NCBI GenBank assembly: GCA_002269645.1
Contig: NIVC01001654.1
Coordinates: 62,001-126,000, forward strand
DNA length: 64,000 nucleotides
Reading direction: 5' to 3'
Origin: Macrostomum lignano
Lineage: Eukaryota
Below, piece after piece: positions 35,201-42,943 of this stretch; within the stretch, counting starts at the first letter, position 1, and the number at the start of each line of letters is the position of its first letter. The notes below the pieces were generated by a model. The model worked only from the letters and a program-made list of their open reading frames with translations, was not told the DNA's origin and searched no databases. A program made the position numbers and the translations under genes.

Positions 35201-38200
35201 GTGACGAAGACGGACATGAAATTCGTAGACAGCACAGTGGCGAATAGTTTCGATAACTCGCTCAGCCTCCTAGTTTACTCGCTTGTGAGCAGCAGCGACT
35301 TGTGCAAGGCCGGCACCTGTGGCTCATCGTCCTGCACTGGTGAGTGCACAGGTTTTCGCCGTGAAGCATCCAGTCACGCGTGACATGACGCTGTGATTCA
35401 ATTACTTCTACAGTTGTAACAATGCGCTGAAAACATATGTTGCTGCACTAAAGAATTGCTTCATGACAAGATTTCAATTTACCAATTTCCAGATCCGACC
35501 GAGGTTGCACAGACCGCTTTGTCCTCCGCGCTGAAAAGTAGCAAAGAAGAAATTTCTAAGAAGACAAAAGCTTGTTGCGGGGACGCCATTCTCAGAGACA
35601 TTATTGTAAGCACCAGTGGTTCCAGTGGTACAGGCGGTTCTAGTGGCACAGGTGGTTCCAGTGGTACAGGTGGTTCCAGTGGTACAGGCGGTTCTAGTGG
35701 TACAGGTGTTTCCAGTGGTACAGGTGGTTCCAGTGGTACAGGTGGTTCCAGTGGCACAGGTTGTTTAGGAGTTGGCTTACATGTACGAGTGTACTTTTCA
35801 TTCACCTACGCGTAACTTTCATAGCAGAGATTTTGATACGTACGTTTCAGCCCCAGCCCCCATTTATAATGTTCAGCAGCACCCACCCCATTTATTTAAA
35901 ATTATTGCAATATATAGTTATCAGCCTCTCCAGAGAGAGTGCGCACGCTGGTTGTTTTGTTCGGTTGGCTAGTAGCCGAAAAATAGTCGCTTACTGCGAA
36001 GACTCAATTTATTGAATGAACCATCAAAACATCTGGTAGCAGAGCGTGGTTCTACTTGTGGTTCTACTTGTGGTTCTACTTCATTGGTAAAAGATGTCTG
36101 ATGAAGAAGCAGAGATGCAAGAACAAGTGCCGGAGGGAGACAGCCGTCTCATTTCGCTGAAGGCCAGAAAAGCGGTCGACAAGTGCGCGTTCACGAAGCA
36201 GCGGAATCGTCTACTGAAGGTATTGGGCTCGGACGGAGCTACTTTAGCGGACGTGGAACCGCTGGCCGGCACTCTGGATGACCACTACGAGCGAGTTAGT
36301 GCGGTGCTACAAGCGATTCTGCCCGAGGTCGTCGGGAATCTACCAGTGCAAGTCCAGACAGTAAAGGAGTTGGAAAAGCTGGAGACTGAGTACGGTGAGA
36401 TTGTAAATTTGCTGAGAGAATTGCGCAAGAGGGAACGAGAGGTGCGACTAGAGTCGAGGGAGATCGAGCAGAAAGAGATGCGACAGAAGGAGTTGGAGGC
36501 AGTCAGGCGGCAGCGGATAGAGATGGAGGAGGAGGAGCGCAGAATGCAGCAGGAGTTTGCAGAGAGGCAGCGCGAGTTAGATGTCAGATTGGATGCGCTA
36601 AGACTGGCAGAGACGTCAGCGAGTGCAAATGATCAATTGTACTCCTCTCAACTACGGGTAGAAGCGGCCGTCCAATCGCAAGCTGCGTACTCAGTACCAG
36701 TCGCCAACCCCATGGTTCAAGCCGACCCTTCAGTCAACCCCTTAATTGGGGAGGGTCAGATCAACTAAGGAGCGCTGAGCAAGGGGGTGAGAGAGTAAAG
36801 GCCGGAGAAAAATCAATACCACCCACCCCAACTGGCGGCAAGTGTGACCACGCTGATTCTAACCAACCCCGCGGACAGCTAGGTATCCAAGCTATGTACG
36901 GTGGAGCTAATTCGCCAATTGGGGCTTCACCGGCCGCCGCAGCAGAATGTACAGCGAAAGCTTGGGCTGAGGAAAGAATCGGTCAGGATATGTGGAGGCA
37001 GTTGCAGAGAGTTGCGATACCGGTGTTTAGTGGAGACAAACGGGAGTTTGAAGGATGGCGGGCGGCTTTCTATGCCTGCGTGCATGCCTCGCCATCTTCA
37101 GAAGCCTATAAGTTGTTGCAATTGCGCCAGTCGCTGCGAGGAGAGGCATTAAAACTTGTTGCGAATCTTGGCTACTCGGAGTTCGCCTACAAAGCGGCTC
37201 TGGAAAGGCTTGAGCGGGAGTATGGTGGAGAGAGACGAAGACTGATGCTGGCACTGGAGGACTTGGATAGTTTCCAACCTATTCAGATAGAGAATGCAAG
37301 TCAATTAAAAAAGCTGGCCGACTTGCTGGATGTTACGGTAGTTAATCTACAGGCTGCAGGGCGAGAGAGTGAGCTAAGCAACAATGGACTTATGTACTTG
37401 AGAGTGCAAAAGAAGCTGCCAACCGAAACCCTAGCTCGTTTTCATCGGTGGATCGGAGAAGCTAGGAAAGAAGATTCGCTCAGAACGTTGCATCGATGGC
37501 TTCTGACGGAGGCAGATTACATGACAGTAGCGTGTGAGGCGGTAAGAGGCGTGGCTTCTTCCGGTGAGACCGGACGGCACGACAGTGTAAAAGCCAAGAA
37601 AACTGTTTCCCGAGGGGCAGCCGCAGCACGCTCGTTTTTTGTGAAGACGAATGATTCGAATAGCCAAAACAAAGAACAGGCGGAAGGGCGAAAAGGTTGT
37701 GGTCTCTGCGGAGAACAGCACGGAGTTTGGAGCTGCCCAAGGTTTCAACGAATGGAACCTGGAGCCAGATGGGCGACGGTTCGTGACAAGCGCCTGTGCT
37801 TCTGCTGCTTGGGAGCAAACCATCTAGCCGGTGCGTGCAAGCGAGCGAGAGTGTGCGGTGTTGATGGCTGCAAAGCAAACCATAATCGGCTGCTGCATCA
37901 ACGAGGGCCGGCGGCGACAACGGCGAATCCGCATGAAGGGGGGTCGCCCAAAACGATCGAAAGACCAAAGTCCTTCCAGGAGAAGAAGAGCACAGTTCAA
38001 GAGCCGCAAGAGGCATGCACTTTACTGGCCAGAACATCGCCGTCAATAGCGCTGAGGACTGTGCCCGTGATTTTATCCAACGGCGGTCGGGAAGTCCGAG
38101 TGAATGTCTTGCTGGACGACGCTAGCACCCGGTCGTACCTGAACTCTGACGTTGCAGCGGAACTCGGCTTGGAAGGCAACCTCGAACCGATGACGGTAAA

Positions 38201-41200: not shown

Positions 41201-42943
41201 TGGTGAACAGGCGTGGCTTACCCAAGGCTATGTATTCTGACAACGGTGGCAACTTTGTAAAAGGTGCAGATGAACTGCGACTTCTGGAGGAGCTGGACAG
41301 GACAAGGATCAGTCGCGAGACATCCAAGCAGCGAGTCAAGTGGAACTTCCAGCCGCCAGCCGCCCCGCACTTTGGTGGAGCCCACGAGGTGATGATTCGG
41401 GCTGCGAAGCGAGCGCTACACGCGATTCTGGGCAGCGCAGATGTCACCGACGAGGAGCTTCAGTCAGCGATCACTGGAGCGGAGGCGCTTATCAACTCGC
41501 GCCCCATCACCTATCAATCGGCGAATCCGAGAGACGAAGAGCCACTAACGCCAAACCATTTCCTGCACGGTCAAGCTGGTGGACAATTCGCGCCGGATGT
41601 GCCCGACGACGTCGCGGCTGACCCGAGGCGGCGGTGGCGGCGCGTCCAAGAACTCGTGAGGCACGTCTGGCGACGCTGGATGCGCGAATGGCTGCCAGGG
41701 TTGCAGCCGAGAGCCAAGTGGGCGGGACCGCAGCGTGATTTACAGCCAGGTGATTTCGTTCTCGTCATCAAAGCAGACTCACCGCGGGGACACTGGCCGT
41801 TGGGACGAGTAGTCGAAGTCTACCCAGGTTCAGACAATCGAGTCCGGGTGGCCAAGGTCCAGGTCGGTGGGACGGTATTTGTGCGGCCTGTGAGCAAACT
41901 GTGCTATCTCGAGTGAGAGGAGTTGATCATTTGCTTAAGAACTGTTTGTTTTCTTTTCCGGACTTTTCCGAGTTTACGCTGAGTTTTCAAATTGTTTGTA
42001 CTGTATCGTGTGCGTTCAGTAGGCTTTCTGCCAGTTTTGGGCTTTTCAAGCCGTTGCCTTTTTGATTATTGGTTGTGTCTGTTTTTGTTCATGGTTTTTT
42101 TTGGGATCAGATTTTTTTGGAGCGCAGTTGGCGCATTTGTTTTTCCTTTGAGTTTGAGCTGTTTGAAGTTTCTGTTAAGTTACGGTGATGGGTTTTTTCT
42201 GTCAACTATTTTCGACTTTATTAAAGTTGCGAGTTTAAGCTGAGTTGCAATTTTTTATATTTTTTGATGTTTAGTGGTAACTTATTTCAGTTTGCGGTCT
42301 TGCGCATTTTCATTATTTTCATTTGCGAGTCTTGGTGGCGGGTGCCGAAACATCTTTTCAGTTTGGCTTTTGAGCTCTTTTGAGCCCTCACGCTTCTCGT
42401 GCTGTTCCCAGGCGTTGTATGTTTTTTTTTGCTATGGTCATAGTTTGTCCGTTCGGTTACTAGGTACTCAAGTTCAGTGTTTCCGGTCTTTGTTGCTGAC
42501 ATTGCTCTGTCAGGAAGGGGGGAATGTTTAGGAGTTGGCTTACATGTACGAGTGTACTTTTCATTCACCTACGCGTAACTTTCATAGCAGAGATTTTGAT
42601 ACGTACGTTTCAGCCCCAGCCCCCATTTATAATGTTCAGCAGCACCCACCCCATTTATTTAAAATTATTGCAATATATAGTTATCAGCCTCTCCAGAGAG
42701 AGTGCGCACGCTGGTTGTTTTGTTCGGTTGGCTAGTAGCCGAAAAATAGTCGCTTACTGCGAAGACTCAATTTATTGAATGAACCATCAAAACACAGGTG
42801 GTTCCAGTGGCACAGGTGGCACCAGTAGTTCCAATGTTTCTTGGGTACCGAAGCTCGCTGCTAAAGACGTCGCACTTGGAAATATTGTTAAATTTCTTTC
42901 CGTTTTCCATGCGTGCCTCTTTATCCGCTCATATCTTGTTTGA
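32282..42943 (+). CDS. CAP-EGF-EGF-(SEA-like)-stalk protein (CAP gene 4), last exon interrupted by a BEL/Pao element
   Basis: Exons 32282-32449, 32994-33310, 33827-33966, 34072-34173, 34280-34524, 35060-35339, and 35493-35761 continuing at 42800-42943. Removing the element and one TSD restores a 554-aa ORF ending [14 protein letters not shown]. As it stands the ORF stops in the LTR at 35815 (524 aa). Confidence 0.85.
33389..33776. repeat. (AGAT)n microsatellite in intron 2 of CAP gene 4
   Basis: About 390 bp AGAT. Confidence 0.98.
35762..36031 (+). repeat. 5' LTR of the BEL/Pao element
   Basis: Direct repeat of 42525-42794. Confidence 0.95.
36094..36768 (+). CDS. BEL/Pao gag N-terminal coiled-coil segment (separate frame from the main polyprotein)
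   Basis: 224-aa E/R/Q-rich helical ORF just after the PBS; the polyprotein frame is open from 36633 and overlaps it in the -1 frame. Confidence 0.7.
   Translation: MSDEEAEMQEQVPEGDSRLISLKARKAVDKCAFTKQRNRLLKVLGSDGATLADVEPLAGTLDDHYERVSAVLQAILPEVVGNLPVQVQTVKELEKLETEYGEIVNLLRELRKREREVRLESREIEQKEMRQKELEAVRRQRIEMEEEERRMQQEFAERQRELDVRLDALRLAETSASANDQLYSSQLRVEAAVQSQAAYSVPVANPMVQADPSVNPLIGEGQIN
36894..41916 (+). pseudogene. BEL/Pao gag-pol polyprotein with two 1-bp frameshifts in the integrase
   Basis: Pao-type gag ([17 protein letters not shown]), three Cys/His knuckles, protease LLDDAS, RT (ADIEEMY, YMDD), RNase H ([10 protein letters not shown]), integrase HHCC, then core ([28 protein letters not shown]) and GPY/F-type C-terminus. 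Single-base losses near 40977 and 41050. Confidence 0.92.
42525..42794 (+). repeat. 3' LTR of the BEL/Pao element
   Basis: Direct repeat of 35762-36031, preceded by the PPT. Confidence 0.95.

Follow-up and report, generated by a model that had tools for sequence, protein, structure and literature searches.

Young BEL/Pao insertion in the last coding exon of a CAP gene of Macrostomum lignano, with an LTR-encoded tail in place of the native C-terminal codons

In the mouse, endogenous retroviruses (ERVs) inserted in the sense orientation cause premature polyadenylation, truncation and protein ends encoded by the long terminal repeat (LTR), as exemplified by Adamts13-s (an IAP element), Mip Cat-Fr (ETn) and Dock7-m (MERV-L, in exon 18) (PMC6466679). 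We describe a related arrangement in the flatworm Macrostomum lignano, in a window of 64,000 nucleotides (positions 62,001 to 126,000 of contig NIVC01001654.1, assembly GCA_002269645.1, forward strand). By six-frame scan this window holds four tandem CAP-domain genes on the + strand, and the last of them, gene 4, is interrupted by a BEL/Pao LTR retrotransposon. As in the mouse ERV alleles, a sense LTR element lies within a transcription unit, the host frame ends inside the element and the native C-terminus is lost. In Mip Cat-Fr the LTR sequence is translated, and the frame of gene 4 likewise ends in the LTR. By contrast, most of the mouse ERVs concerned lie in introns and exert their effect by aberrant splicing together with LTR polyadenylation, whereas at gene 4 the insertion is within the last coding exon itself. 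The mouse elements are ERVs; the gene 4 element belongs to BEL/Pao.

LTR retrotransposons make up 21 % of the M. lignano genome, 180 Mb of which lies in duplicated blocks of at least 95 % identity (PMC5730564), and five Bel/Pao families have been described in the species (PMC12801592). In such a genome it is to be expected that one copy of a duplicated gene will be found to carry a young LTR insertion. In Drosophila melanogaster, a Doc element reportedly truncates CHKov1, and the change is said to be adaptive, with a product that is not simply null. The two loci have in common a transposon in a coding region and a truncated product, but the CHKov1 case rests on expression, phenotype and population genetics, and that of gene 4 on DNA sequence.

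A direct-repeat search of 33000-45500 returned a pair of 270-nt sequences that are identical at 270/270 positions, lie as direct repeats and have the ends TGT...ACA, that is, the TG...CA type. Because the flanking bases immediately outside the two copies are not alike, the LTR borders are exact. So delimited, the element spans 35762-42794 (7,033 bp) on the + strand, in the same orientation as gene 4, and is enclosed by a 5-bp target-site duplication (TSD) that matches at 5/5 positions:

35757-35761, + strand: left TSD, CAGGT (sequence comparison)
35762-36031, + strand: 5' LTR, 270 bp, TG..CA (direct-repeat search)
42525-42794, + strand: 3' LTR, same sequence as the 5' LTR (direct-repeat search)
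42795-42799, + strand: right TSD, CAGGT (sequence comparison)

Two exact 270-nt copies together with a perfect duplication cannot be a chance occurrence, and joining the flanks (35761 to 42800) restores the host open reading frame (ORF) with its native tail. Elsewhere in the window we found neither a second copy of the element nor a solo LTR, and heat-shock elements, which have been reported for some M. lignano families, were sought in the LTR and not found. An initial first-pass annotation of this DNA had called the insertion fresh. The identity of the LTRs justifies the word young, with the qualification that 0/270 differences still allow a divergence of up to about 1.1 % (95 % level), which puts any finer dating out of reach, and that the integrase frame is broken as assembled.

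The insertion point falls inside a GSSGTG repeat of the terminal coding exon, exactly between two codons. From there the host frame continues into the 5' LTR and reaches a stop 51 nt further on:

35762-35815, + strand: LTR-encoded tail, 17 codons and TAA (35813-35815), in frame with exon 7 (translation)
42800-42943, + strand: displaced native end of exon 7, 47 codons and TGA (42941-42943) (translation of the joined flanks)

Of the native protein, 507 residues are kept and 47 are cut off; with the 17 new ones, the present product would have 524 amino acids. Across the junction 35761/42800 the rejoined frame reads one further GSSGTG unit, then 41 residues, then the TGA. We consider this segment, now pushed 7 kb downstream, to be the true native end because genes 2 and 3 close with a corresponding tail in the same frame, finishing (L/F)I(H/R)SYLV. 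The structural outline drawn in the first-pass annotation is thus borne out: a BEL/Pao element in sense orientation (its domains and the gene are both on the + strand), a landing site in the GSSGTG repeat, which is present on both sides, with a perfect CAGGT duplication, a native tail displaced by 7 kb, a frame that runs into the LTR as far as 35815, and earlier exons that are intact. An exact-product look-up of the chimeric last-exon ORF gave no match.

At the far end of the element, the final 16 nt of the 3' LTR contain an ATG that shares its frame with the orphaned tail. This ATG opens a 54-codon ORF (42779-42943) consisting of MNHQNT, one TSD codon and the 47 native residues, and a transcript begun in the 3' LTR could in principle yield a hydrophobic mini-peptide.

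Gene 4 has seven exons with GT-AG borders throughout and a continuous open frame. Its native introns measure 98-544 nt, and the donors at all six are GTAAGC, GTGAGT or GTAAGT:

32282-32449, + strand: exon 1, with the ATG and a signal-peptide-like N-terminus (100 % identity to gene 3 exon 1)
32994-33310, + strand: exon 2, second half of the CAP domain with GHYTA and CEY motifs (Pfam CAP)
33827-33966, + strand: exon 3, Cys-rich hinge (the GLIPR1/CRISP chain match extends to amino acids ~197-217)
34072-34173, + strand: exon 4, Cys-rich (gene model)
34280-34524, + strand: exon 5, EGF-like Cys pattern (weak EGF match)
35060-35339, + strand: exon 6 (gene model)
35493-35761, + strand: exon 7, host part, closing with eight GSSGTG units (18-nt repeat, 35616-35761)

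Judged by sequence, the genes belong to the CAP (SCP/TAPS, GLIPR1-like) family. In the gene 4 product the CAP domain (PF00188) is matched at E=5e-14 over amino acids 36-157, and among solved structures human GLIPR1 comes closest (E=9.5e-22), with CRISPs and helminth ASP/VAL proteins next. The N-terminus has a positively charged start, a hydrophobic core (hydropathy 2.66 over 11 residues) and then SEA, a pattern resembling a secretion signal. The CAP domain comes next, followed by the Cys-rich hinge, the EGF-like Cys pattern, a stretch of ~130 residues for which no known relative was found, and the GSSGTG repeat. Protein searches with this product were made both with and without the repeat, and the only database relatives sharing the full architecture are two M. 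lignano proteins, A0A1I8HYU9 (87 % identity) and BOX15_Mlig001346g1 (81 %). The database so searched returned these two M. lignano paralogues only and contained a transcript-derived product of neither gene 3 nor gene 4.

Among CAP proteins, GLIPR1 has a C-terminal membrane anchor, and GLIPR1L1 and PI16 are anchored through glycosylphosphatidylinositol (GPI). Yeast Pry3, a GPI-anchored CAP protein, becomes soluble when its GPI site is removed and then shows no activity in a mating assay (PMC7340583). Like these membrane-attached proteins, those of M. lignano have a CAP domain, a stalk of low complexity rich in Ser, Thr and Gly, a C-terminus that is hydrophobic and, putatively, a signal peptide; their anchoring is likewise putative. 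Unlike them, they carry ~300 further residues (Cys-rich, EGF-like and other) that have no solved or Pfam relative. In the native layout of genes 2-4, a putative secretion signal is followed towards the C-terminus by a stalk of small residues rich in Ser, Gly and Thr, a polar stretch and a hydrophobic segment that reaches the very last residue, leaving no cytoplasmic tail. GPI-anchored proteins are laid out in this manner. The mean Kyte-Doolittle hydropathy of the last 19-20 residues is 1.4-2.0 in these native tails. The tail of BOX15_Mlig001346g1 has another sequence and is still hydrophobic (2.1 over its last 15-17 residues). That the character of the tail appears to be kept, rather than its sequence, fits a processing signal; candidate omega sites, picked by eye only, are SSSN, GTG and AKD. 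A role of the native tail as a GPI-signal-like anchor is plausible.

Can the new tail replace it? The LTR-encoded tail has a hydropathy of 1.03 over its 17 residues and of 0.65-0.8 over the last 12-15, with a His and an Arg mid-tail. It is too short and too polar to span a membrane and ill suited to serve as a GPI tail. Re-anchoring by the new tail, an option raised in the first-pass annotation, is made unlikely by the comparison with the native tails: should the protein be made, secretion in soluble form or degradation is much the likelier fate.

The interior of the element stands out from its surroundings by a G+C content of 53-56 % against about 40 %, and contains the following features:

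36034-36049, + strand: putative primer-binding site TGGTAGCAGAGCGTGG, a 16-mer starting TGG, 2 nt past the 5' LTR
36094-36768, + strand: ORF1, 224 amino acids, frame 1 (ORF scan)
36894-41024, + strand: gag-pol ORF, 1376 amino acids (ORF scan, Pfam)
37026-37442, + strand: DUF1759 (PF03564) (Pfam)
~37797, + strand: CCHC knuckle, in the gag-pol ORF
38082-38255, + strand: aspartyl protease, weak match, in the gag-pol ORF
39072-39449, + strand: RVT_1 (PF00078) (Pfam)
39639-40115, + strand: Peptidase_A17 (PF05380), the Pao signature, E=3e-48 (Pfam)
40812-40970, + strand: Integrase_H2C2 (PF17921) (Pfam)
40975-41035, + strand: frame-break interval between integrase zinc-binding domain and catalytic core (ORF and Pfam frames)
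41002-41913, + strand: open frame holding the integrase core and DUF5641 (ORF scan, Pfam)
41080-41280, + strand: rve (PF00665), weak, beginning only at profile position 16 (Pfam)
41629-41910, + strand: DUF5641 (PF18701) (Pfam)
42512-42524, + strand: putative polypurine tract AGGAAGGGGGGAA, a 13-nt purine run adjoining the 3' LTR (sequence)

The element is a BEL/Pao LTR retrotransposon, because it has the Pfam domains of this group, Peptidase_A17 included, in the expected order: DUF1759 gag, protease, reverse transcriptase (RT), Peptidase_A17, integrase and DUF5641. It further resembles BEL/Pao elements (Belpaoviridae) in its TG..CA LTRs, 5-bp TSD, putative primer-binding site and putative polypurine tract, and in the run from DUF1759 and CCHC knuckle to DUF5641. 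It is set apart from them by a separate upstream ORF1, by the break in the integrase frame as assembled, and by its distance from other members. A 381-residue RT/A17 piece matches 832 proteins at E ≤ 1e-20; among the 120 matches listed (of the 832), all contain Peptidase_A17 and most also RVT_1, and the best relatives among those listed, from molluscs, nemerteans, corals and sponges, are ~53 % identical. This search found no near-identical M. lignano protein, and an exact-product look-up of the element's long ORF gave no match.

The first 11 nt of the putative primer-binding site resemble what we take to be the complement of the 3' end of initiator tRNA-Met; no tRNA genes and no Rfam families were found in the window. 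Past this site, the leader (36046-36081) has GTGGTTCTACTT three times in tandem. ORF1, for which there was no Pfam match, overlaps the next open frame by 133 nt in a differing frame. A programmed frameshift from ORF1 into gag-pol was considered and rejected, there being no slippery heptamer within the overlap.

An uninterrupted gag-pol frame is absent. The zinc-binding domain of the integrase is in frame 0, which ends at 41021, and the core is in frame 1, open from 41002, with a short homopolymer situated at the break. Judging from these frames, the copy as assembled cannot make a complete integrase. The break could be a defect present on arrival, a sign of a defective copy mobilised in trans, one later mutation or an assembly indel, and one change in the 6.5-kb interior is compatible with none in the 540 bp of LTR.

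We consider it most probable, at roughly 0.6, that the recent BEL/Pao insertion has given rise to a C-terminally truncated allele of gene 4, in which loss of the anchor, or partial loss of function, is tolerated in a redundant paralogue. Transcripts from the intact gene 4 promoter would run into the 5' LTR and terminate either where the LTR itself directs 3' processing or at some point beyond. With the new stop in its last exon, the chimeric mRNA should escape decay that depends on exon junctions. Its protein would enter the secretory pathway without the native hydrophobic, GPI-signal-like tail and, rather than being re-anchored, would be secreted in soluble form or degraded. Such a loss is most likely tolerated because genes 3 and 2 encode near-identical proteins with native tails. 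The truncated allele may be neutral, or it may have begun to decay into a pseudogene, and is probably no adaptive novelty.

The redundancy is closest with gene 3, which lies 7.4 kb upstream. Genes 3 and 4 belong to a tandem unit of ~7.4 kb that is 95-98 % identical over kilobases. Their exons 1-2 are 100 % identical and the remaining exons 95-99 %. Gene 3 is intact, with seven exons as in gene 4, a 533-residue protein and the native tail, and provides an uninterrupted comparison site:

29202-29551, + strand: terminal exon of gene 3 (same-frame tail)

A retrotransposon depends on its LTR for the 3'-end signal of its own RNA, and a host transcript that reads into the 5' LTR from upstream includes the whole of U3-R-U5. 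This established knowledge, with the analogy to sense ERV insertions (PMC6466679), makes 3' processing in the LTR an expectation. The first-pass annotation had listed it as seen or established, which goes too far: neither AATAAA nor ATTAAA is present in the LTR, and the first such hexamer past the new stop is at 37148. A candidate native signal, found only at gene 4 among genes 2-4, lies beyond the element, 80 nt past the native stop:

43023-43028, + strand: AATAAA, candidate native poly(A) signal (hexamer scan)

Several points weigh against a truncated, tolerated allele. The missing hexamer in the LTR is one, though weak as evidence: in genes 2 and 3, too, a canonical poly(A) hexamer is absent within 400 nt of the stop. 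Of the 417 codons shared by genes 3 and 4, 12 show non-synonymous and 6 synonymous differences; these are too few to say much, and no strong constraint is visible in them. The native tails themselves contain Lys, His and Arg, and every step beyond the DNA structure is one that we infer.

The main rival of truncation is a null allele, which we regard as possible though unlikely. The element would silence gene 4 by spreading small-RNA or chromatin repression, or a read-through mRNA with a multi-kb 3' untranslated region would be unstable, and gene 4 would be a young pseudogene. The element is indeed full-length, 7 kb with both LTRs present, and beyond an LTR with no canonical hexamer the first ATTAAA comes 1.3 kb after the stop. 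Intact, near-identical paralogues would remove selection against such a loss, and exonic insertions of ERVs or short interspersed elements in the mouse often lower or abolish the mRNA (PMC6466679). Set against this, the promoter region and upstream exons of gene 4 are intact and 98-100 % identical to those of gene 3, and the stop falls in the terminal exon. The requirement that an LTR carry a working 3'-end signal for the element's RNA also speaks against a null allele.

Expression of a functional chimeric protein, either a secreted isoform or a re-anchored one, is improbable. The first-pass annotation had raised the prospect of an instant neofunctionalisation, which we regard as speculation: nothing at the locus points to it, and with gene 3 a near-identical intact copy, tolerated loss is the simpler account. 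The 17-codon extension is in frame, the LTR has the sense orientation and no upstream exon is damaged, and an adaptive transposon truncation is reportedly known from Doc in CHKov1. An LTR translated into a protein end is documented in Mip Cat-Fr (PMC6466679). However, the new tail has few residues, weak hydrophobicity and a His and an Arg inside it, and 17 codons before a stop are roughly what one expects of a random frame. There is no sign of selection, and the soluble form of Pry3 was inactive in the assay used.

Still less probable is that the mRNA loses the element by splicing, as a newly formed intron. CAGGT, the duplicated sequence, matches the exon/intron consensus, reading CAG/GT at the 5' border and ...ACAG/GT at the 3' border, and the six CAG/GT sites (the border and five upstream in the repeat) share one codon phase with the border acceptor. 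Splicing from 35759/35760, or from any of the five upstream sites, to 42797/42798 would restore the native tail in frame. The available donors, however, are GTGGTT, GTGTTT or GTTGTT, against GTAAGC, GTGAGT and GTAAGT at the native introns. The acceptor tract is A-rich, with a pyrimidine fraction of 0.40 against 0.45-0.90 at native acceptors, although the native acceptor at 0.45 is similarly poor, and an intron of 7 kb compares with 98-544 nt for the gene's own. It is equally improbable that excision of the 7-kb element gives a native-tailed mRNA with an LTR-terminated soluble isoform besides. If true, a single insertion would have made an anchored CAP gene yield both anchored and secreted forms, and an intron would have been born in one step.

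An assembly artefact, in which the element or the duplication of genes 3 and 4 comes from mis-joined reads, is the least probable explanation of all. In its favour, the M. lignano assemblies so far published contain much redundancy and many repeats (PMC5730564), identity between genes 3 and 4 is 95-100 %, and the integrase frame break, located at a short homopolymer or close to one, could have arisen from a sequencing indel. A mis-join, however, would not give exact LTR ends and a perfect 5-bp duplication whose removal restores an open frame. The number of repeats, a 15-codon indel and the length of the microsatellite also distinguish gene 3 from gene 4, as would be expected of real paralogues.

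Gene 4 had nine GSSGTG units before the insertion (35616-35761 and 42800-42817), against three each in genes 2 and 3 (21960-22020 and 29310-29370), and it is without the 15 codons that precede the tail in genes 2 and 3. Stalk length thus changes quickly among the gene copies. Across genes 2-4 (16110-35339) identity is a mosaic: exon 2 of gene 2 is only 77 % identical, and exon 5 of gene 4 shares 98.9 % identity with gene 2 but 95.1 % with gene 3. Such a pattern suggests gene conversion or unequal crossing-over within the array. Intron 2 carries a GATA/TAGA microsatellite of unequal length in the copies (33391-33788, ~99 units; 25988-27500, ~378; 18716-19413, ~175).

Gene 1 (5350-11221) is a distant CAP copy of 40-47 % identity. 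No EGF-like, stalk or tail exons of this gene were recognisable in 1-16000, so that on this showing the putatively anchored architecture is confined to genes 2-4, and no fifth CAP copy was found downstream of gene 4. The locus of BOX15_Mlig001346g1 in GCA_002269645.1 was considered as an empty site and rejected; it is a diverged, single-copy paralogous locus of 77-92 % identity. A literature search on the locus tag found nothing. The other deposited relative, A0A1I8HYU9, is a gene-2-like copy that ends in the GSSGTG repeat read in another frame, probably through a frameshift or model error in an older assembly. Database C-termini of this CAP family are therefore not to be trusted.

Other repeats and transposon remnants lie around the genes. 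Upstream of gene 4 is an inverted repeat with two arms of ~255 nt (30807-31061 and 31190-31447) that are ~130 nt apart, and a matching one lies upstream of gene 3 (23414-23671 and 23800-24054). It looks like a foldback element or one akin to a miniature inverted-repeat transposable element (MITE). Between genes 1 and 2, an ORF of 304 amino acids on the - strand (13909-14823) matches HTH_32 and HTH_48 (Mos1 transposase HTH) and is likely a remnant of a Tc1/mariner-type transposase. The final 11 kb (52991-63997) consists almost wholly of long tandem arrays with periods of 32, 30, 21, 26, 41, 21 and 23 nt. More tandem arrays occupy 5797-6630, 7744-8202 and 11432-12595, the last of which is also found in the paralogous locus of BOX15_Mlig001346g1.

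The kind of event seen at gene 4 is well known, and what we describe is a new flatworm instance of it, not a new mechanism. If the chimeric mRNA is expressed, the locus would be a clean natural case of a transposon altering a protein localisation signal in one step. A near-identical, untouched paralogue would then lie adjacent as an internal control, in an animal that can be made transgenic. For the present, the insertion is mainly a record of recent BEL/Pao activity in M. lignano and a further case of a transposon disrupting one copy in a duplicated gene family.

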